A DNA stretch of 64,000 nt from Lepidodermella squamata (lineage: Eukaryota > Animalia > Gastrotricha). Shown in pieces: positions 44,411 to 57,356 of this stretch. Below the pieces are notes generated by a model. It did not search any database and had not been told where the DNA came from. It was given only the letters and a program-made list of their open reading frames with translations. A program made the position numbers and the translations under genes. Location of the stretch: NCBI GenBank assembly GCA_047495785.1, contig JBLDXI010000026.1, positions 372,001 through 436,000 on the forward strand, written 5' to 3'. How positions within the stretch are numbered: the first letter of the stretch is position 1; every line of letters begins with the position of its first letter.

Positions 44411-46130
44411 ATGGATACCAGCGATGAACAGTGTGTCAAGAAACATAAGTCAGTAGTCTACTGCAACGTAATTATTTCGTGACTTTTTTGACTTCACGAC
44501 CCAATTTTTTTCATATAGATTTGTGGAAAAGTTGTCCCGCCAAGAGAACGTTATCATCCTAGGCAATGTAATGCCTGCCAAGTAATTCTTTATTCTCAAC
44601 ATTTTCGGTAATAATTTCTAGCGTTCATTTAGAAATTTTTCGCTCGACAACGCGAACGAAGATTTGAATTTCAATGTATCACTGGGAAATTCAACTGCGA
44701 GATAAATCCGGGAGAAACTCGTGGTTGCTGTACCCGTTGCCGGCTTGAAAAATGCTTTACATTGAGACTCCAAAGATGTATGTCATTTGTTTTTCTATTT
44801 TTGGACAGATATATATATAAGTAGAATCCTCTAGATTTAAGGAAGAAAAGCGATGATTCTCCGGGCGATACTGAAAAGGATCCAAGTGAAGATTCTAGGT
44901 CGAAAGAAGATAACTCGGCTTCAAATGAAAATTCATGTGGCATCTGGCTTAGTGCCATTGGCGAAGAATCAGCCTCCCGCTTTGTAGCTGCTAATAGCAG
45001 GAATTCAATTATACCAAACAATCCTGTTCTAATCCACTTCAGACAGGTGGAGGAAGTCACCAAAAGCTGCATTATCGCGCTCACGTTTCTGCATGACTTG
45101 CATTCGGTAACTTTATCTAGGTTTTCTCAGTCCAATCACTCATTCCATGTCGAATTTAGCTCCCGCTGAGAAGACGGAACGTTCCTTATGATGACATCTC
45201 CCAGCTAGCATCAGAATTTTACACCGGTCAGATCAGGATCTACAACGAAGCAAGCACCAAATTCGCTAAGTACTTAAAGGGTACACATTTTTTCAATTAA
45301 TCTGATTTTGCTCATCGATTCATTTCAAGTTTAATGTTACTCTATCGCAGATGCTTTTGGAGTTTCTAATCACGAATTGACTCAAGCTGTGGCGACCGGG
45401 TGGCCCTCAACTGTGTTAGGTTTCACTGCCCAACCTGGCAGCGATAACCCAACACCAGTCAACGAAGCTCTCTTGCCAGCATTTCTGACCGCTTTTCCCG
45501 AGTTTGAGGTAAGCACTGTTAACCGCTATTTTCAATGGTACATGATACGAAACAAACAGTTGAACATGTATGATGCTATGCTATACATGCGTCTCACCTT
45601 CATGTTCAAAATAAGAATCCCAATATACCATATCTCAGGAAGCAAATGAGTTGAGCCCTGGCCCCTAGCGTGATTAACATTATTCGGTAGCTTTTCATCA
45701 GTCGAAAGGCGGAGTCTAACATTGTAAATCTATTTATTATTTTTACAGCCTGCCGTTATGTCGGCTAGGCAGCTATCCCGCGTGCTGAGTGCCTGGCAAC
45801 CAACAATGCCGGAATGCGCTTTATTTCTCTGTTACCTATTCTTCAGCGGTATATTTATCAAATCTGTATTTTCCGTTTTGGGTACATCAAATGATTCTTT
45901 GATACGCAGGATCCTCGATTCCGAAATTGGTTCGACTGTCAAATTTCTTGCTAAAATCGCTGTTCATGCATTACGTTGCTCTGAGAAGAGGGAATCAGCG
46001 GCAGGATGGAATTCACATCGAAAGAGCCATGGCTATCATGCAACAAACCACAGCAGATAGACCGACATTTTTGAAAAAAGCGGAGGCTCACTTAACTTCC
46101 TGGGTGCGAGACGTCAAGCCGTCCTTGTAG
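44411..46130 (+). CDS. Divergent NHR, copy 9 (P-box CNACQK)
   Basis: MDTSDEQCVKKHKSVVYCN|ICGKVVPPRERYHPRQCNACQ|KFFARQRERRFEFQC...; LBD exons in ORFs 45377, 45758 and 45927. Confidence 0.85.
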
Positions 46131-46789
46131 TCTGAAGTCTGAAGCGTTGTTAACCTTTTCGTGTTTTAGTGACATCTCAATTAATAAACATCGGTTCGTC
46201 GAGTCGTCTGGCGAAGAAATCGATTCTGCTTTTCCTGATAATGGGTTGTGTACTGAATTTTCCTCATCCTATCTCTTATCACATTTCAATGTCCCCACGG
46301 TCTTCGAATTCTTCAAATTTCGGTCATCGCCACTGATCACACCATATCAAGTTTAGTTACAGCGCAATTCGAAATGACTCCAGCAATAGCTTTCAATTTA
46401 TTGGCGACGAAGCGCTGAATTTTAGGTATAAAACGATGAAAATAGTAATTGCTGGTGTTTATCACCTATGAAAGTATGGAATGTCATCACTGATCACCTA
46501 CTCACGCCGCTCGGTGTCTGATGTGCGAGTTCGATCAATAATTCTGCTCTATTAAAGCCTCAGACTAGTATTACAGCTTCTGAAATTTAATATACTACGA
46601 GTTAGGCATTGAATTGGAAAGCAGCATCAATAAGCGTTTTGCCTTGCATTGCAAGAGTTGGAACGACGTTTTGAGGCGATTATCGCTGTTTTTTTCGTGA
46701 CGAACTATCACACCATAAAACCTACGAAAGCGTTATTGTTATTTCCTGAAAGCCATAGAATAGGTTACTATCCCGTCTTTCTTATGCAG

Positions 46790-46997
46790 CGAATTCGGTT
46801 CCGGCGTTGGCACGAATATCAGATATCTTGCTGAATCATGCATTACGATGCTTTAAGAAAAGGATGTCAGTCGAAGGACGAGAATCATGTTGAAAGAACT
46901 ATTGCTATCAAGCAGCAGGCTGCAGCGTATAGGCCCGGCGTTGTTCAAAAAAGCAGAGGCGCGCCCGATTTCCTGGGTTAAAAACATCAGTTCATGA
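46790..46997 (+). pseudogene. NHR last-exon pseudogene fragment
   Basis: Frameshifted homologue encoding ALARISDILL / MHYDALRKGCQSKDENHVERTIAIKQQAAAYRP / SWVKNISS*. Confidence 0.75.
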
Positions 46998-47771
46998 ATT
47001 TAAGAAGTGTTCTCTTGCTTGATAATGAAATAATACAAAATACAATAATGATTAAGGGAATATCTTTTAGCGGAACCAAATTTACAGTGAGCGGAACCAA
47101 ATTTGCTTTTTGCGGAACCAAACTCGAAAGGGTGGCTGAGCGAGCGTAGCAGAAAAGTGAGTTGCGCTGCAGAGTGAACGTAGCAGAAATCAAAACAGTG
47201 TAGCAGCAACGCGTGTTTAGTAGCACTTATACGTAATCCGTCGCGCATTCATCTAATCCGCTGCGTAAACCCGTGCTATGACGCGGCAGGTGGTGCGACG
47301 GTCGCAAAAATAAGGGTGAGCGTAGCAATTTGATCCAAACTGAATTTGGTAAAAAGTTGTTATATTGTTATATATTGTTATATAGGCAACACTATAACAT
47401 ATAGGAAGCAAACGATCTTTCTATAGTGACTTCATTCGAGCTGAATTCGCTGAAAGATGCGGCACGCGACCACTTTATGCCATCTATCGAATGAGCCCAG
47501 CTAAATTTTGCCAGTCTCATAATTAATTTTCTAGAATTTTGGGCTGTCTTTGCAGGTTTACGGCAACTTTGCCATTCTTCTGCCGCGGTTGGCTTGTCCG
47601 GAAATTTTTTGAAAATTAGTTTTTTCATGTTGAGAATTGTCTCTATCCGTCGATTTTATGGTCTATCATGAAGGAATAGAAACTTTTACTATTCTTCCAT
47701 CGTAATAGTCATTGTGCGCGGCGTGCGCGCTGGAGACTCGAGAGATCTGGAGATCTTAAGCGAAGAAGAGC

Positions 47772-47960
47772 GGGACTGGCACTGCGCGAGGAGGCGGGCC
47801 GCCCACAGTTCTGGTTACGCATGGGGGCGGGCGTCATGCTGCTGCTCAACGTAAAAACGCGCTTTACGGTTTTATATAGCGAAATTTAGGCTGCTCTCAT
47901 CTGCTATAAAATGCTGTAATGCCCTGCCGCCGCCTGCGCCGCCTACTGTCTCCTGCCAAG
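47772..47960 (+). repeat. GC-rich dispersed repeat, second copy of 26393-26590
   Basis: Direct sequence similarity to 26393-26590. Confidence 0.75.
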
Positions 47961-50078
47961 TCCGGCAGTTTTTAAGGCAGAATAGTCGAAATTCCTCGTT
48001 TTATCGTCGTTGAGGGTATCAAAATCTCCGCATTGCGATTTTTCTCCGCAAGACTAGAAGCGTCTTGTAAGGTCTTGTAAGGTCTTGTAACATTGCGTGA
48101 GATGAAAAGTCGCAAGAGTATATAAAATATTAATAATAGTAATATTTTCATTTAGTCAATGTCTATATCGATAAACGGTTTTGAAGAGGGCGAAGGCTGG
48201 CGAAAGATGGAAATCACCCACCACCTCAGTTGAAGATCCTACTTTTTCCGAGAAATTCATAATAATTAATTGTGTTAACTATCAAGTGTTAACAAAAGTC
48301 GCAAGAGTATATAAAAATACCTACTAAAAATATCTTAGTTTTTCGAGCTCTATCCGAAAAAAATGTTTTGCGATGATCTGAAAACATAGGTTGGGATGAT
48401 GGATGATCTGAAAACACGAAATTGCCCAATTCAATTTTGTTTGAATAATTAAAATAAATGTTTTGAATAATCTGTAATTATAACTTTTTCGACTTGCTAC
48501 GTTCACTCAGATTTTTGCTACGGTACTTCAGATTTGCTATATAACACCGGGTGGTGCTACACTCGCACAGATTTCTAGCGCTCGTTGCGCTTCTCCTAAT
48601 TCTGCTACGCTCACTCAGGTTTACGCAGCGCTCACCATTTAACTCAACTCGAAATCGTGCCATGCAAACTGGCTGGTGGTTAATGGATTTTATACCTAAT
48701 TTTAGCCATTTTTCATGTGTTACATGGTCGAATAAAGACGAAATAGGTGCCAAAATGACCGCGCTGCCGCGCTGAGCAAAAATTTGTGCGAATATTTGCT
48801 ACATGCCTCACCGATGTTGCGCAATAAGAAAAAAACTGTAGTGCGTAGTACATTTATGTTTGCGTGTGCCGGTTATGCAACTGGTGCGCGAGCGCGCATT
48901 GTTGGCACATGCGCGATTACGCGTTCGCATGAAAGTACTGTAGCAAAAAGCACACGCCGGCATTAATCAGTCTAATGATTTCGTTTGCGGCGTAAGCCTT
49001 CGATTAAAAAATTCCTCATAAGAGGCGTTTTCTATGGAAAACTAAAAAACACGTGCCCGTTATTTTTGAGACGCTCATCAGTCATATGTTACAGAAACAA
49101 GTTCCAAATATTGGAATTGTCCATAGGCGCTACCAATGTGGTGGCTCATGGAGGCCGAAATTTGCAGCAATGTTACATACGTGCTTCCGTATTTGTATAT
49201 GCTTTCGCTTCGTTTTGGCTGCATCGATTTTAGAGCCAGAATTCCGTAATTCTGGCCAGAATTCAGGCATTCTCATACTTGGCCAGGCCCAGTCATCGAG
49301 GTCAAGGTCTTTCGTTTTGCAAAATAAATGTACGGTTTTGCTGGTATCAGCTATGCATGCGTCAGGCCACATTTAATACAATTAATACCACATTTAATAC
49401 AAAACGTCACCCATCATGAATTGTGTAGTTTCTCATTTATCATAAAATGTACAAGTTGAAATCTGAGCGGATTTTTAAATTTTCAAAACTTTGAAATTAG
49501 ACGGGGGCTATATATCTAATACCGCGGTTCTCGCCGTCCGGAATATTTTTTTATAGTCCCAGCCGCAGTATTAAGGATCCAGCTGCGCTACTTTCGGCTA
49601 CTCATCCATGTACGCTCATTTAAGTAGGTTATTGTGGCTTTTTCGGCTGACAGGCGAAAGGAGTAGGATGAATATGAGAAACCAATATTAAATATTATTA
49701 GTTTTAGGTTAAATTCTACCGATAAATTGGACATAGCAAGCGGGAAAAGTCAAAACTGAAATGCGCTCAAAATCGGTCAGAAAACGGTCAGAATTATGAG
49801 CAGCTGTTAGGTATAAAAGCGCTGACATTAAGGTGTAAGGAGCGCTATAGGGACTACTACACAATGCAAGGGATTAAAATGTGCGCACGCAAAAAAACGT
49901 CAAAACATTTGTCAACAAGGAAAGGGCTCACAATGCATAAAAAAACAACGCGCGCACTAATTAATTTGTGTCATGTTGCTGCTCATGCAACAAATAGAGC
50001 ACGCCACGCCGTGTGCACTATTTATCGAAATGAGCGCACGCAAAAAACTCAGTCATAGTTTTTGAGTTTTGGGCATTT

Positions 50079-53000
50079 CGTTCACGTCGCGGAAGAACTC
50101 GCACTTCTGAAAAAGTCCGACAGTACATCTAGTACAGTTAGCTTATGCTGTACCGATTAGTACTGTAATATCTACCGTATAAAAAGTACTGTTTTTTCGA
50201 CCGTACTTTTTCTACGGCGGGCTAGCCGTATGATTTAGTACAGCGGAATGAAACTGTAGTCATAGTACTGTCGATGGCAGCTGTATATGATTGTACGGTA
50301 TCCAGCCGTAGTTGATAGTACGGCTTGCTGTATTTGAAAGTACGGCACAGAACTGTAGAAAAAGTACTGTCGGACTTTTCGAAATTCTGCAACGCACGAC
50401 CTTATGAATTATAACAGCCTGAAACCACACTGTTTATGACGACGCAGCTGTGTTGTTTTTTTTGTCTTGATATGCCGAGCAGTCGATAATTAGTAGGTAA
50501 CGCACTTCGAGGGAAAGATTGACGCGACTGGCACCATTTCATGAATAGATATTGACGACACATTCGAATCGCCAAGCGAAAAGCCTAACCCATGTCATGG
50601 TAATAAAAGTATGCAATCAATCAGAGCATCTCATGATACTTATATATGCATGCCCGAACGGTTCTATAATAAAAATAAAGAATATTTGCTTGACTACTTG
50701 AGACCATTGCTTTATTTTCTGGTTGGCCATACGATATTAATTAAAATACTTCCATTTCTTTCAAAATAATTTATTGCATTTCTGCCTAAGAACCGGTTTT
50801 CTCGAAATTATTTTAGATTTTTTCAGTCTCGAAATTTTTCAGAACCACAAGAAAATGCCTGATTTTATTGTCAAAGTGACATTGTTTTCGGCGAAATGGG
50901 CTCGCTACGTCAAAATTAGCGAAGAATGTCAAAACGCGCTCATAGTGATAAAAGGCAAAGTTTATGCTGTCTACCGCAATTTGTTTAAAGCCGACGATTA
51001 TTCCATGTTTTGGAGCGATGAAGAGCATCTGATAATCATCGAGGATGAGGATGATTTGCGACTAGCTTTCGAGTTGAACACCGGCGTTTTGAGCATCACC
51101 GTAGTTTTTGGCGAGGAACTTCAAGAAATGATGGCGGTCAAGCGCCCAACATTGTCTAATCAGGTTGATCAACTTACGAGAATGATCTCAGGTCAGCTGT
51201 TAAAAATCTTAGAAAACTAGTCGAAAATAATTGGCGTTGGTGCGACCTTTGGCCCATTTAGCCTGAGGCCTTCCTTGCTAAAATGATTAAATTTTTCTTT
51301 TTTTCATTGCTATTTCATCATTTCATTATTATACAGAACTGCAAACCGATCCGAGCAAGCAAACACCCTTTAATTCGGCTGGGAGTCTCGGCACTTTAAA
51401 CCAGTTGCTACCAGCTGGCGCTGCTACGGGCCTGGAGACTGTAGTTGACCGGAAAGGGGCCCCTTACGATAAGGTGAATGAGATTCCTCTGCTGAAGCAA
51501 ATAGCGGTCATAATGGACGACCGCAAGGACAAGGGTGAACTGGGATACACCCGATCGACTGCGAACTATCATTTCAAGAAAATGACCACGTGGAATTGCG
51601 GTAATATTATTTCCCTGGACATTTCTTAAAATCTGTTTATTCTAAATACCTATTCTAGTCATATACGAGATGGTATCGAAAGAAGCTTACTGTTTTTTCT
51701 CCGAAGAAACTGACTTGGAGCATCCAAACGGCAGCTCAGCAGGGTCCGCACTATTCATCTACATAACGAGATATCTTTCGGTCAGTCATCCGCGCTGCAA
51801 GACGCTGATAGTTTACTCCGATAATGGGACTGGAAATCATAGTCAATATTTCGCCAATGCCATCATGTTTGCGTTGCAAAATGGGCTAACTTCGCTGAAA
51901 TCGATTCATCATAAATTCTTTCAGCCAAATCACACAATGATGGTGGTTGACTGCTGCCACTCGTAAGAATTTTTTATACTACTTAGTTTTTGCAAGAATT
52001 TTAGTAACATAGGCTGATTGAAAGGAGGGCAAGCCGGCATCAGGTATTTGTACCAGAAGATTGGCGTGAAATAGCCCGTTTATGTCGACCCTCTCAGCCA
52101 TTCATAATTCACAACTTGACCTGGGATCAAATGCTCAATTTTCACGGTGAGCCGAACTTCACCGCAAAACTCAGAAAGCCAAAGAATTGGAAGTCGACTA
52201 ACAATTCGAATCGCGACTTCTTCGGCATTGGTGAGCGTCCATCCACCCAGAGTGACTATCTACCCTGGTCTGAAGGGGTTTGGTTTTGGTACGAAAAGGG
52301 GCACCCATCCACCCTTCGCGTTCGTGACGGATACGAATCCTTATGGCCATGGAAGACTTACTCCCTATCAACGCAAGCCAAAAAGAGCATTCCGGCTGGT
52401 GCACCTACTCTGGCAATGACCAGCCCCCTGGCGATATCTTATAGCTTAAAGGCTGATCTGTTGCAAATTTTAAGGGCCGAAATTATTCCGCTGCGACACT
52501 CTGATTACATTCTTAACTTGCCCTATAAAATGTGGAGTGGAAAGCCGAATGAGTACCGAGCAATATTTAATAATTTCGGAAAGCTCCAAAATAGAATGGA
52601 ATATGATTCTGATTTTGATTGATCTTCAATTTGACGTGATTATTCCAAAATAAAAGAAATTTCTGTACGCTAAAATAATGATGTGCGTCTAATTTGTCAC
52701 TAGCTCATTTGTCGCCGCCATGAAGTATAGCCGGCTTCCCGAACAAAAATACTAGCCTCTGAAATGAGTCAAAACCGAGCATGAGTTGCAATATACAAAC
52801 GCGTTCATCACACTATCGATTATAGCCGCCATTTATCAGTAGCCATTCATACTTTGATATATTATGATATATATTCAACGATTTTAACTGTACAGCCTCT
52901 ATACTGTAATTAACCGTAGATTGCGGTACAGCAGCCCCAGCTGTACATGTTTAATACAGTCATTTGCCGTACATCTATGTACAGTACACCCGACAGTACT

Positions 53001-53215
53001 AATAACTACGGCATTTGGCAGTACTTATCAGTACAGTGTGATTACAGTATGCTAATGTACGGCCGGGATTTACTGTACAAATACTACAGCTGTAATACCG
53101 TACAAAAAATACTGTCGAGATGCGCTGTACGAAAAATACAGTCAACGAAGCTGTACACGGCAGTACTGTAATCAGAAAAAAAAACCGAAGTGCGAGTTCT
53201 TCCGCGACGTGAACG
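50079..53215 (+). mobile_element. Sola1-like DNA transposon, 3137 bp
   Basis: Perfect 29-bp TIR CGTTCACGTCGCGGAAGAACTCGCACTTC; 4-bp TSD ATTT (50075-50078 and 53216-53219, fitting AWWT); GTAC/CTGTA-rich subterminal blocks at both ends. Confidence 0.9.
50855..52622 (+). CDS. PB1 domain-Sola1-type transposase fusion protein, ~504 aa, 4 exons
   Basis: Exons 50855-51191, 51337-51600, 51659-51962 and 52013-52622 splice (GT-AG) into one open frame of 1515 nt. N-terminus FIVKVT...YSMFWSDEEHLIIIEDEDDLRLAFEL...LSITV is PB1-like. Core VIMD...LIVYSDNGTGN...IHHKFFQPNHTMMVVDCCHSLIE...FVPEDW...PFII is Sola1-like. Confidence 0.8.
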
Positions 53216-53240
53216 ATTTTTTGTATCATGTTTGAAAATC

Positions 53241-53720
53241 ATGGCTGGTACTCGCCCCGCGAAATTTGCCCCTGCCACTACGGAGGCTGTCGATGCTGAA
53301 GCGCCCGGAATCAGCGCCGCCGCGCCGCCGCGAGGTCACACGAGAACGGCGTCTGCCAAAGACGACTCCCCATCGCCGCTAATCGGGGTCGCGCCGGCTT
53401 CGCCCCGCCAATTTACCTGCGCCAGCGCCGCCAGATCAAGACGCGTTAACGGAACTGCAAATCGAAGATGAGCGCACGCAATTTCGCCGAGTTCTCAAGC
53501 GCAGTCGGTTGCGTCACTCGGTTCATCAACACCTGTTTTCGAGCCTGTTTCTCAACTCCTTGCCCTAGACGAAGTTGAAGCCAAAATCGCCGGCTTTCGC
53601 GCAGGGCAAAAAGTCGAAGAAACCTTGATGCAGAAGTGCGCGGTCATCAAGGCTGAGCTGGCCGATTTCGTCGAAAATTTCGCCAGCTTTAACATCTCAT
53701 CTACAGTGCTCCCTCGATAA
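53241..53720 (+). pseudogene. Small unknown ORF (~159 codons) with one in-frame TGA
   Basis: MAGTRPAKF...GTANRR*AHAISPSS...LALDEVEAKIAGFRAGQKVEETLMQKCAVIKAELADFVENF...LPR* reads in a single frame. Confidence 0.45.
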
Positions 53721-56089
53721 AAGCACTGGGTCGGGAGCCAGACCCGGTCTTTAAACAAGGGAAAGCTATAACGAGGGCTGTTATTGGATGCAGGAGCTAA
53801 AAATAGACCGTTGCCAAGTCTTAAGACAGTTGCCATTGCAACGTGCTGAAAGAGACGGACACGGATTATGTGTAATCGCAAATTTTGCTCGCTGAAGGCT
53901 ATTAAACGCTAACGCGATGAATTCAAATTGCGTTTTTTAAATTAACTTGAATTAAAATAGTAAAATAATTCCATTTATAATCACAGCTTAAAATTTTAAT
54001 AATCTTGGTCATCCCAAGCCTTTACCCGGTTAATGGGGCTTCAAATTAGGATGGTGTCACAAATGGCTCCTCCTTTTACCGTGAATTTTCAGTGAGCGGA
54101 ACAAAATTTTGAATCAGCCAATTTTCCAGTGGCCTGAAATCACTTTTCGGATATTTCTCTGAAACAAATCACAAGCAAAGCGTAACATTCTCTATAACGC
54201 GAAGCGTTGAATTCAGAACTCATGCTTCGCCCAAAATTCGTGAAATTGTTCAAAAAATGACTAATATTAAATGTGAAAAAATTAGGACGAATTATATATT
54301 TTCGATTATTTTTACGCAGTTACTCTTTCAATTTCATCGAATTACTGGCATTGAGCGATAACGGATCCCGTAACTTCAAAGCATAAGACGTGCGGTTCCG
54401 CCAAGAGGAAACACCGATTCGATGGGTATTTCGAGCGAATCGAATTAATTAATCTGATTTCGATTAATTCTGAGCGAATCTGATTTCCATTTGACTGGCC
54501 AATTAAGACCAGAGTCAGTTACAAAAATCGGGCAGAAGCTCCCGCCGCCCCTCCTCGGGATGTTTCGGTTTTTAAAGTCAAAATCTAATTATTAAAAGTT
54601 GTGAAAACACCGAGAAAATTGCCAGGGCGCTGATTAATGAAATCGTAAAGTAGTGGCATCCATTTTCATGTTAGTAGATCAGGCCCATCAACCATCGATC
54701 AAATAATAATTCCAGTAACTCGAACTCGAGCGAATGAAATCGGTGTAATGATGAATTAGCGAATGCGAATAAATTCATGTATCAAAATTTAATTAGATCT
54801 GAAAACAAGGACTTGATTTTTCGTGATTACGCAACACGGCTGGGAAACAAATTTGAAAAACTGAAAAAGTCATCTTTTAGATTGAAACAGTAGTCAGGAA
54901 TTTTCGACCAGGAAAACCTGAATTTTATTAGTGATTTCCAATTAGGCTCACGGTTTATTCCAGCGGGATTCATTCAAAGATTGAGAAATAACTTCAGAAG
55001 TTAAACAAAATACCACGAAGTTTCAGTTTTTCCTAAGAAAAAGTCACGATTGTAATCCTGATTCATGCTAATAATGCTGCAACATTCAAAGAGATTTCTT
55101 GGCCGGGAAAACTTCTAAAAAATGAAAAATCAGGGCAATTCAATGGGTCTACTGGTTGATCAGCAATTGACCTCATGAAAAATCCGCAAATAAAGAAGGT
55201 TAAATAAAGATAGAAGGGCATTTTTATAGTTTTGTTGAAACGAATTACTAATTGTTTTCAGATGATTTGGCGTAATTTCAGATGGAATTTTAACTGAAAA
55301 ATCAGGACCACTCGCAGCACGACTTGAGTAGCAGCTAATCCACGCACTCTGTTGCATAATCAAACTCATTTCAAATCCATAAGAACAACTAAATGCACTG
55401 ATGATCTGTTTCCACTTGTTTCCACTAAGCTTGAAAAAGCTGGATCTCTCTAAACCACGGCAACGCGCCGCTGGGTTTCTAAGAACGCAAATTTTTCACA
55501 CTTAATTTTTTTAATTGATCAGATAATTATTTTTTGTTTAATTAAAAATGTACAACTAATTTATTTAGCAGGGTCCAAAATTACGGTCTACAAACGAGGG
55601 AGTTCTTTTAAGGAGGGTGCCACTAACGAGGGAGCACTGTACTACTTGCACAATAACTCATTTTTAGCCATTAATTTCAGAGCTGATAATATTGAATAAA
55701 ATAATTTTCAATAAAATACCAAGGAGATGGCTCTACAGAGGAACGCAGTTCAGAATAAAAAATTCAGTTCTTGAAAATAAATTTCCATGCGTGCGCGAAA
55801 TTAAAAAGCAATTTTGATACGTTTCAAGGCCTTTCCAGAAAAAATGATTTTAAACGTTTTAAGGCTTTGTTTTCAAGGCCTTGCGTTTCGATTGTTGCAT
55901 TGTGTAGTAGTCCCGCGCTATATCGTCGTGACAGAAGGGCGCCGGGCGAGAGGGCGACGAATGGAATTCATATAAAACTGTGCTTTCTATCAGCATTTTC
56001 AAACACATTTTTTTAGTCGAAAATTTTTGAACCCTTTTCAATAAAATCCAATAATTCGATAATTCCAATGATTACTCGACTACAATCAA

Positions 56090-57356
56090 TCTATAATACT
56101 AAAGAGAGAAGGTTTTCGGGAAAGGAGGTTTGTACGGATTTATTTCATAACGCTTAGGAATAACGGAAAACTAAAAACATGGTTAGATAGATATTCAAAT
56201 TTTAGATATCAGAAAACTATCAGCTCATCCAATGGCCTCGGTTAGGGTCGACTTTTAAGCAAAAAACACATTTTCCGGAAGCAGTACCGGAAGCACACCA
56301 AGTTGCGTGACGCGCGCGCGCGCACAGCTAAAATTTTGGAGTGCGCGTAAAACTTTTTTATTTTGATTTTTTCACGCGAGAACCCTATATTCATTTGAAA
56401 GAGAATTGTCTGAAGTTTATTTTGGTATAAAAACCGCCACGAAACTCTAATGTAGCCCTTTGACATCAGCGCGCGCGGCCTAATTTCGTTAAAAATTTTG
56501 ATTTCGTGTTTCGCGCAAATAATACGGAATTAGGTAGCGCTACCGCGCGCACACACACACACAACAGGAGGTTGCTACTATTACACCTACTACTACTACT
56601 ACTACACCTCGGTTCTACGATAACTGAGACCCGACAACCAAGAAAACGACAACTGAGACCAAATAATTATAATAAATTAAATGTTTAATAAAAGCCTAAA
56701 TTGGAGCCGAATATTGAGCATATTCAGCATATTGAGACACCAACCCAACCCAACCCTAACCCTAACCCCAACCCTAACCATAACTATAAAACGTAAAGTA
56801 GTACCATAAGAGTAAGCCATTCCCTTTAATTTAATTTATTAGAATTATTTGGTCTCGGTTGTCGGTGTCTTGGTTGTCCGAGATTTAATTAATTATTAAA
56901 TCGAATTATTTGGTCTCGGTTGTCGGTGTCTCGGTTGTCGGTGTCTCGGTTAGCGAAAATAAAATTATTTATTTATATTTTATTTTATTTTATTTTATTT
57001 ATTTTATTTTGGTCTCGGTTGTCCGGTCTCAGTTGTCGGATCTGAGTTGTCGTGATCTCAGTTGTCGGAGTAAGGGCTACTTTCCTCAAATAAATTCGCT
57101 TATTTTTTAATTTTATGATATTGAGCGATTGAGCGCAAGGTGTTAGGAAACAATTACATATCAGCTTGATTTTTCGCGTTATAGCTCCCTATTAGCTCCC
57201 CAATTTTCCTCACAAACTATTACCCATATTTACCTAAAATGCATGCATTACACGGTGTCCACGAGCAGATAAATTTACAGGATCTTATCTGAAATTTTGA
57301 TGGTTTCTCTATAGTTTGGATGGCCGGACCGAAGGGCCGGCCCCTGCTATTGCTAG
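56090..57356 (+). mobile_element. Non-autonomous Helitron
   Basis: 5' A|TCTATAATACTAAAGAGAG; 3' GC-rich hairpin GGCCGGACCGAAGGGCCGGCC (57322-57342) then CTAG|T; no TSD. Confidence 0.7.
56610..57078. repeat. Foldback-like repeat (GAGACC..GACAAC / GTTGTC..GGTCTC arrays) with internal CCCTAA repeats, nested in the Helitron
   Basis: Motif arrays in opposite orientation on each side; CCCTAA-like run at ~56744-56780. Confidence 0.6.

Follow-up and report, generated by a model that had tools for sequence, protein, structure and literature searches.

We analyzed a 64,000-nt stretch of the Lepidodermella squamata genome (assembly GCA_047495785.1, contig JBLDXI010000026.1, positions 372,001-436,000 of the forward strand), hereafter called the window, on which all coordinates are based. 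Our focus is a 3,137-bp Sola1-type transposon at 50079-53215, which includes a transposase gene in four exons, an array of short subterminal repeats at each end, and terminal inverted repeats (TIRs) flanked by putative target site duplications (TSDs). An original prediction, made from the letters alone, had described this element as an intact and recently mobile Sola1-like transposon whose transposase begins with a PB1 domain. Here, we describe the element and its enzyme, assess the identity of the first exon and the evidence for mobility, and then consider how the parts may work together.

The two TIR arms are 100% complementary over 29 nt, or over 30 nt if the T/A pair just outside them is counted (50078-50107 and 53187-53216), and the 29-mer occurs exactly twice in the window compared to zero times in 100 shuffles. 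ATTT lies directly outside both ends of the element, which matches the AWWT target duplication that is a hallmark of Sola1 (PMC3845634). Thus, the perfect 29-bp TIRs, the ATTT duplication, and the link between AWWT-type duplications and Sola1 all stand as originally described. No further copy of the TIR, of the protein, or of either flank is present elsewhere in the window.

Just inside the TIRs, the inner 300-330 bp at both ends are filled by arrays of a short motif, W-GTAC-N-G-Y, with 27 oriented copies in total. The copies are commonly spaced 25-27 bp apart and point inward throughout. The 2.5-kb middle of the element has only four GTAC sites, and GTAC is strongly enriched at the two ends compared to elsewhere in the window (Poisson p 2e-25). 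The repeats are probable protein-binding sites.

Between the arrays lies the transposase gene. The exon model comes from a script that tried all GT-AG combinations, and one four-exon GT-AG model gives a single open frame of 504 amino acids (aa), with introns of 145, 58, and 50 nt (Table 1). This agrees with the earlier model of four exons and an uninterrupted frame of ~504 aa, including the placement of the first junction at 51191/51337. The residues that were singled out in that model are likewise all present in the spliced protein: IVK (5-7), the acidic stretch WSDEE..IIIEDEDDL..A (53-70), VIMD(D) (170-174), YSD (252-254), and VVD (295-297). Introns 2 and 3 are supported because the profile alignment described below runs continuously across the exon 2/3 and 3/4 junctions, and the position of intron 3 is the same in two relatives (L002 and L003), which break at the same exon 3/4 point.

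Table 1. Predicted features of the Sola1-type element, in window coordinates.
Feature	Position	Strand	Remarks
Left TSD copy (putative, 4 bp), ATTT	50075-50078	.	Direct reading; fits AWWT
Left TIR, 29 nt (30 nt counting T50078)	50079-50107	+	100% complementary to right arm
Left subterminal array, 12 W-GTAC-N-G-Y copies	50108-50400	+	All inward-pointing; probable protein-binding sites
Exon 1: start codon and 112 codons; PB1-like domain (~residues 2-88) and helical tail	50855-51191	+	Phase-1 donor GT at 51192
Intron 1, 145 nt, GT..AG, pyrimidine-rich 3' end	51192-51336	+	Sequence and open reading frame list
Exon 2: variable linker (~residues 113-165) and putative first catalytic Asp D173/D174 in IAVIMDD	51337-51600	+	Asp assigned by spacing
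Exon 3: Sola1 core with putative second Asp D254 (YSDNGTGN) and third Asp D297 (NHTMMVVD)	51659-51962	+	Profile match; alone 26 bits, E 6e-08
Exon 4: Sola1 transposase C-terminal half, basic insertion KLRKPKNWK..., stop codon	52013-52622	+	Profile match, alone 51 bits
Right subterminal array, 15 W-GTAC-N-G-Y copies	52880-53186	-	Inward-pointing
Right TIR, 29 nt (30 nt counting A53216)	53187-53215	-	100% complementary to left arm
Right TSD copy (putative), ATTT	53216-53219	.	Direct reading; a contig from a public run joins 50076 to 53217

The putative joining of exon 1 to exon 2 across intron 1 is supported by three features: the frame stays open, splice signals are present, and no alternative start codon exists. 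The locus could instead hold two units: a stand-alone gene for a 121-aa protein that runs from exon 1 into intron 1, plus a transposase remnant without a start, with no fusion of the two by splicing. With intron 1 retained, the exon 1 frame does close, at TAG 51218-51220, and the resulting 121-aa protein would consist of the PB1-like domain and helical tail only. In addition, searches of sequencing runs found no RNA runs containing the gene. However, the first in-frame Met downstream of exon 1 is M172, right at the first putative catalytic Asp, which leaves exons 2-4 without a plausible start codon. The donor (CAG/GTCAGC) and the pyrimidine-rich acceptor of intron 1 also hold the frame open, and sequence changes in exons 2-4 relative to a public run are mostly silent (see below). 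We therefore regard two separate units as quite improbable.

The catalytic part of the spliced protein was assigned with a Sola1 profile built from 21 DUF7869 proteins. Residues 189-474 match profile positions 334-588 (102 bits, E 1.5e-33 for one target). Majorek et al. 2014 give the RNase H-like core of Repbase Sola1-1_AP in their supplement (PMC3985635), and a Sola1-1_AP fragment falls on profile positions 332-383 with 65 bits, in register with the match of the spliced protein. This shared register indicates that DUF7869 is the Sola1 core and that our protein is a divergent member. D254 and D297 sit in aligned conserved motifs of the profile. The match begins 15 residues downstream of D174, a spacing identical to that of the Sola1 consensus, and D174 would be the first catalytic Asp, assigned by this spacing and not by alignment. 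Altogether, these comparisons identify the predicted catalytic half as a divergent but clear Sola1 DDD core (D174, D254, and D297) followed by a Sola1 C-terminal region. The Sola1-type core with three Asp motifs in order, as the original prediction had it, is thus upheld. A Pfam scan gave no match in exons 2-4, where DUF7869 itself scores nothing, and no MULE, MuDR, or SWIM matches in the protein.

The Sola1 sub-lineage to which the element belongs is very rare in databases. An exhaustive HMMER search of 1.84 billion representatives with exon 4 gave 13 matches only, several of the longer ones carrying Pfam DUF7869, and a word-indexed search with the same exon returned a single protein, P0001. 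The close relatives are all fragments (P0001, 60% identity; P0002 and P0003, 43% identity), and their contigs of 1.0-1.6 kb stop short of an N-terminal exon. One of them, P0003 (L003, 319-894; 43% identity to exon 4), has a Cys-rich tail with several CxxC pairs, and our element has no such tail; accessory domains thus seem to vary within this rare sub-lineage.

Ordinary Sola1 enzymes have a conserved region upstream of the core, which spans ~330 positions of the 21-protein profile and includes several invariant Cys, His, and Arg residues. This Cys-rich N-terminus is typical of the Sola1 family but is not part of its definition. Profile positions 1-333 gave no match in the spliced protein or in any frame of 46000-57000, in line with the long N-terminal region having been reported absent from the outset. 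Hidden upstream exons for a canonical Sola1 N-terminus were also considered and ruled out, since none was found in any frame. In place of the Sola1 N-terminus, the enzyme has a ~90-aa domain on its own 5' exon, followed by the variable linker.

We are fairly confident that this exon 1 domain is PB1-like. PB1 (PF00564) is the top Pfam match of exon 1, with residues 43-76 aligning to profile positions 34-70 (E 0.093). In a language-model search of the ESM Atlas, PB1 clusters make up 36 of the 60 best matches (score 0.92, 174-182 shared features, recognition 3291); these values exceed the tool's guide values, in what is a lead-level test. Residues 1-45 alone still retrieve PB1 clusters along with TFG (score 0.84), even though this segment lacks the acidic stretch and lies almost wholly outside the Pfam-matched residues. 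PB1 is described as a domain of 80-100 aa, in which a Lys in strand 1 marks the type 2/B face and an OPCA core of the form D-x-D/E-x-D/E marks the type 1/A face (PMC7051960). At ~88 aa, the exon 1 domain fits this description, as does the predicted order of its elements, in which hydrophobic strands alternate with amphipathic helices. A candidate for the strand-1 Lys is K7 in FIVKV, in an N-terminal half that lies outside any alignment. The stretch FWSDEEHLIIIEDEDDL follows an aromatic-acidic-hydrophobic-acidic pattern and has the acidity and length appropriate for OPCA.

The PB1 assignment has to be set against several results that weigh against it. The Pfam score is 13.1 bits compared to a gathering score of 23.6, and noise matches with similar E values appear alongside it. 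A PDB sequence search with exon 1 gave no PB1 match, only a chance one to PDE5A. AlphaFold2, run without an alignment on residues 1-112 and 1-88, gave low predicted local distance difference test (pLDDT) values (47.9 and 47.3) and no beta-grasp, and searches with this low-confidence model (Foldseek against the PDB and the ESM Atlas shape search) returned nothing meaningful. A search of 5.8 billion proteins between 62 and 196 aa in length returned no homologs of exon 1. Aligned without gaps to Y-x-D-E-D-G-D...S-D-E-E-L, the exon 1 stretch has an acidic residue at just one of the three OPCA core positions, so a type I/II label is premature; type I/II status and head-to-tail polymerization of the domain are, for now, presumptions. 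The proposed PB1 identity of exon 1 therefore stands in part: its language-model neighbors and its top Pfam match are PB1, but the Pfam match is below threshold and the AlphaFold2 models lack the beta-grasp. The same is true of the profile comparisons of the spliced protein and of exon 1, in which the Sola1 core was found as anticipated, while the PB1 match was sub-threshold and covered residues 43-76 only.

These negative results are also what would be expected if exon 1 encoded an orphan N-terminal domain other than PB1, such as a lineage-specific DNA-binding domain or a small alpha/beta domain that reads GTACNG, with its PB1 likeness due to the acidic stretch and a common strand-helix pattern. 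The sub-threshold Pfam match beside noise matches, the PDB search, and the models without a beta-grasp are all in keeping with such a domain. Furthermore, the subterminal repeats need some form of recognition, and no other DNA-binding domain is evident in the protein. However, two different methods agree on one family among ~25,000, and the PB1 and TFG clusters are retrieved even by residues 1-45, without the acidic stretch. The domain is also acidic overall, which is a poor fit to DNA binding. We therefore consider an orphan domain unlikely, and continue with the PB1-like assignment.

To look at copies of the element, we compared 49000-54500 with contigs from a public sequencing run (X1), whose source is either the same organism or one very close to it; its flanking sequence is 99% identical. 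A 367-nt contig from X1 joins 50076 straight to 53217, skipping the element. This empty-site contig has a depth of 236 versus 41 in the neighboring single-copy flank, which indicates that the host sequence is a repeat of ~6 copies and that the contig represents a paralog of the insertion site. TIRs of 30 nt with a duplication of only 1 or 2 bp would formally fit the same contig, but we rejected this alternative because no superfamily property matches it. Within the element, depth is ~195 (single-copy flank, 41), which would fit about five full-length copies; it reaches 800-2,400 at the ends, where end-only copies outnumber full copies. Several joints in X1 connect left-end with right-end sequence (e.g., 50967 to 53076), as expected of internally deleted derivatives; because the short sides of the joints are 27-47 nt, this reading of them is suggestive only. 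The recent mobility that was originally proposed is borne out in the form of these signs (the empty paralogous site, the ~5 copies by depth, and the deletion joints), and we regard the element as real and probably active.

The coding sequence also bears on whether the element is functional in its own right. Among the changes listed between the window and X1, 17 are coding, 9 of them synonymous and 8 non-synonymous (ratio of non-synonymous to synonymous rates, dN/dS, ~0.24; binomial p 0.004), and the introns have 7 changes in 253 nt, while the exons have 17 over a length of 1,515 nt (p 0.07); these figures are indications rather than measurements. Seven of the 17 coding differences fall within 76 nt of the exon 2 linker (51377-51452), and five of these seven are silent. 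In a second, differently coded organism (X2), exon 1 (50869-51151, 97% identity) and the right subterminal region (52962-53179) are present at ~96-97% identity; no other part of the element was seen in X2, where depth is only 3-4 and such gaps are therefore uninformative.

We considered whether the element might be a defective Sola1 derivative that is truncated at the N-terminus and moved in trans by a canonical Sola1 enzyme encoded elsewhere in the genome, in which case the frame and the front exon would be functionless. The loss of the entire conserved Sola1 N-terminal region would be consistent with such a derivative, as would the excess of end-only over full copies. On the other hand, the frame is intact across four exons, and silent changes are in excess among those listed. 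In other samples, the corresponding C-terminal half is still open in relatives of 43-60% identity, and exon 1 itself is found at 97% identity in the second organism. Given this, a derivative of this kind seems very doubtful.

The window also contains other repeats and a host gene. The flanks at 49850-50076 and 53217-53356 are repeated ~six-fold in X1 (depth 236 compared to 41 for 49007-49849), so this Sola1 copy sits inside another repeat family, of which there is no second copy in the window. Just downstream, 53600-54335 is a very high-copy repeat, with summed depth in X1 of up to 10,369 and with numerous loose ends and short joints; X2 has this repeat as well. At the other end of the window, coding exons of a protein kinase gene of the host lie on the minus strand at 1805-2185 (Pfam Pkinase, E 2e-27), with neighboring exons probably within 981-2495.

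Taking the parts together, the interpretation to which we give somewhat better than even weight is that the element is a young, low-copy Sola1 cut-and-paste transposon that encodes one spliced 504-aa transposase, with a PB1-like 5' exon that serves protein assembly. In addition to the results on exon 1 and its splicing given above, the following points count against this interpretation. The empty site is paralogous rather than allelic. It also has seven T, compared to the six predicted for a 4-bp ATTT duplication; we took the extra T as homopolymer variation between paralogs, so that proof of the exact TSD length falls short by one base. The element contains no partner gene, and a transposase without a recognized DNA-binding domain may be inactive.

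If the 5' exon does encode a PB1-like beta-grasp domain, this domain could serve protein-protein assembly in two ways. First, it may gather transposase subunits at the repeat-rich ends by self-association. Alternatively, it may link the catalytic subunit to a DNA-binding protein encoded elsewhere, which would recognize the GTACNG repeats; with no space in the element for another gene, this partner would act in trans. An unspliced transcript would yield the 121-aa PB1-like-only protein, which might, purely speculatively, modulate assembly. The original prediction further proposed a putative dominant-negative role or a putative link to host p62/aPKC pathways. We also entertain, as a long shot, a broader idea: PB1 may be a docking module shared by the catalytic subunits of unrelated transposon superfamilies in this animal, recruiting, by front-to-back contacts between PB1 domains, PB1 plus Myb-like proteins that read subterminal repeats such as GTACNG. 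Our element would then be the catalytic-only half of such a system, mobile only where a matching partner is expressed.

To our knowledge, Sola1 is among the least studied cut-and-paste superfamilies, and we know of no structure or biochemical study of a Sola1 enzyme, nor of an account of how it finds its ends, although no literature search aimed at this was made. A compact, apparently live 504-aa enzyme with an exchanged N-terminus would be a convenient test case for the role of that region, and the dense, oriented GTACNG arrays provide a direct handle for binding assays. The element itself is of moderate interest, which would be greater if PB1 proved to be a docking device shared among the transposons of this genome.

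Sola1, for which Bao et al. 2009 is reportedly the reference, is the known system most similar to our element. The element shares with Sola1 (Repbase Sola1-1_AP and the DUF7869 proteins of insects and fish) a homologous DDD core, the C-terminal region, TIRs, and a 4-bp AWWT-type TSD. Its compact size is not without precedent, as autonomous Sola1 elements of 2.3-2.8 kb, whose enzymes have ~600 aa, have been described (PMC3845634). The element differs in that its core is too divergent for Pfam DUF7869 to score, and in that the Cys-rich N-terminus of ordinary enzymes (profile positions 1-333) is exchanged for the PB1-like exon and linker. Pfam PB1 was found in none of the 120 DUF7869 proteins listed. 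For the proposed assembly mechanism, PIF/Harbinger transposons, with a transposase and a Myb-like DNA-binding partner, offer a possible working analogy in which a catalytic subunit that lacks end recognition of its own is recruited to subterminal sites by a second protein. Unlike these, our element carries no partner gene, and docking by PB1 is hypothetical.

A PB1 domain at the head of a transposase has been described before, contrary to the original prediction, which knew of no such fusion. Plant PB1-containing Mutator-like elements (PB1-MULEs) and the domesticated MUSTANG-B (MUGB) genes have an N-terminal PB1 on a short extra 5' exon (PMC3435246, PMC4948706), and PB1-MULEs have been found in nine plant genomes (PMC4948706). 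The likeness to our element is that PB1, or a PB1-like domain in our case, heads a DDE-type transposase by way of a short 5' exon. PB1-MULEs and MUSTANG-B are Mutator-like and occur in plants, whereas our element belongs to Sola1 and an animal. The PB1 of PB1-MULEs passes domain searches, while that of our exon 1 does not. In MULEs, PB1 was added while the MuDR DNA-binding and SWIM domains were kept, whereas in our element the PB1-like exon appears to replace the N-terminal region. If the PB1 assignment is true, a transposase would have captured PB1 independently for a second time, after the plant MULEs, in which the role of the domain is still unexplained, and this would suggest recurrent use of PB1 oligomerization or partner docking for transpososome assembly. 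What would be new here is the Sola1 superfamily, the animal host, and a PB1 that seemingly replaces, rather than extends, the N-terminus of the enzyme.

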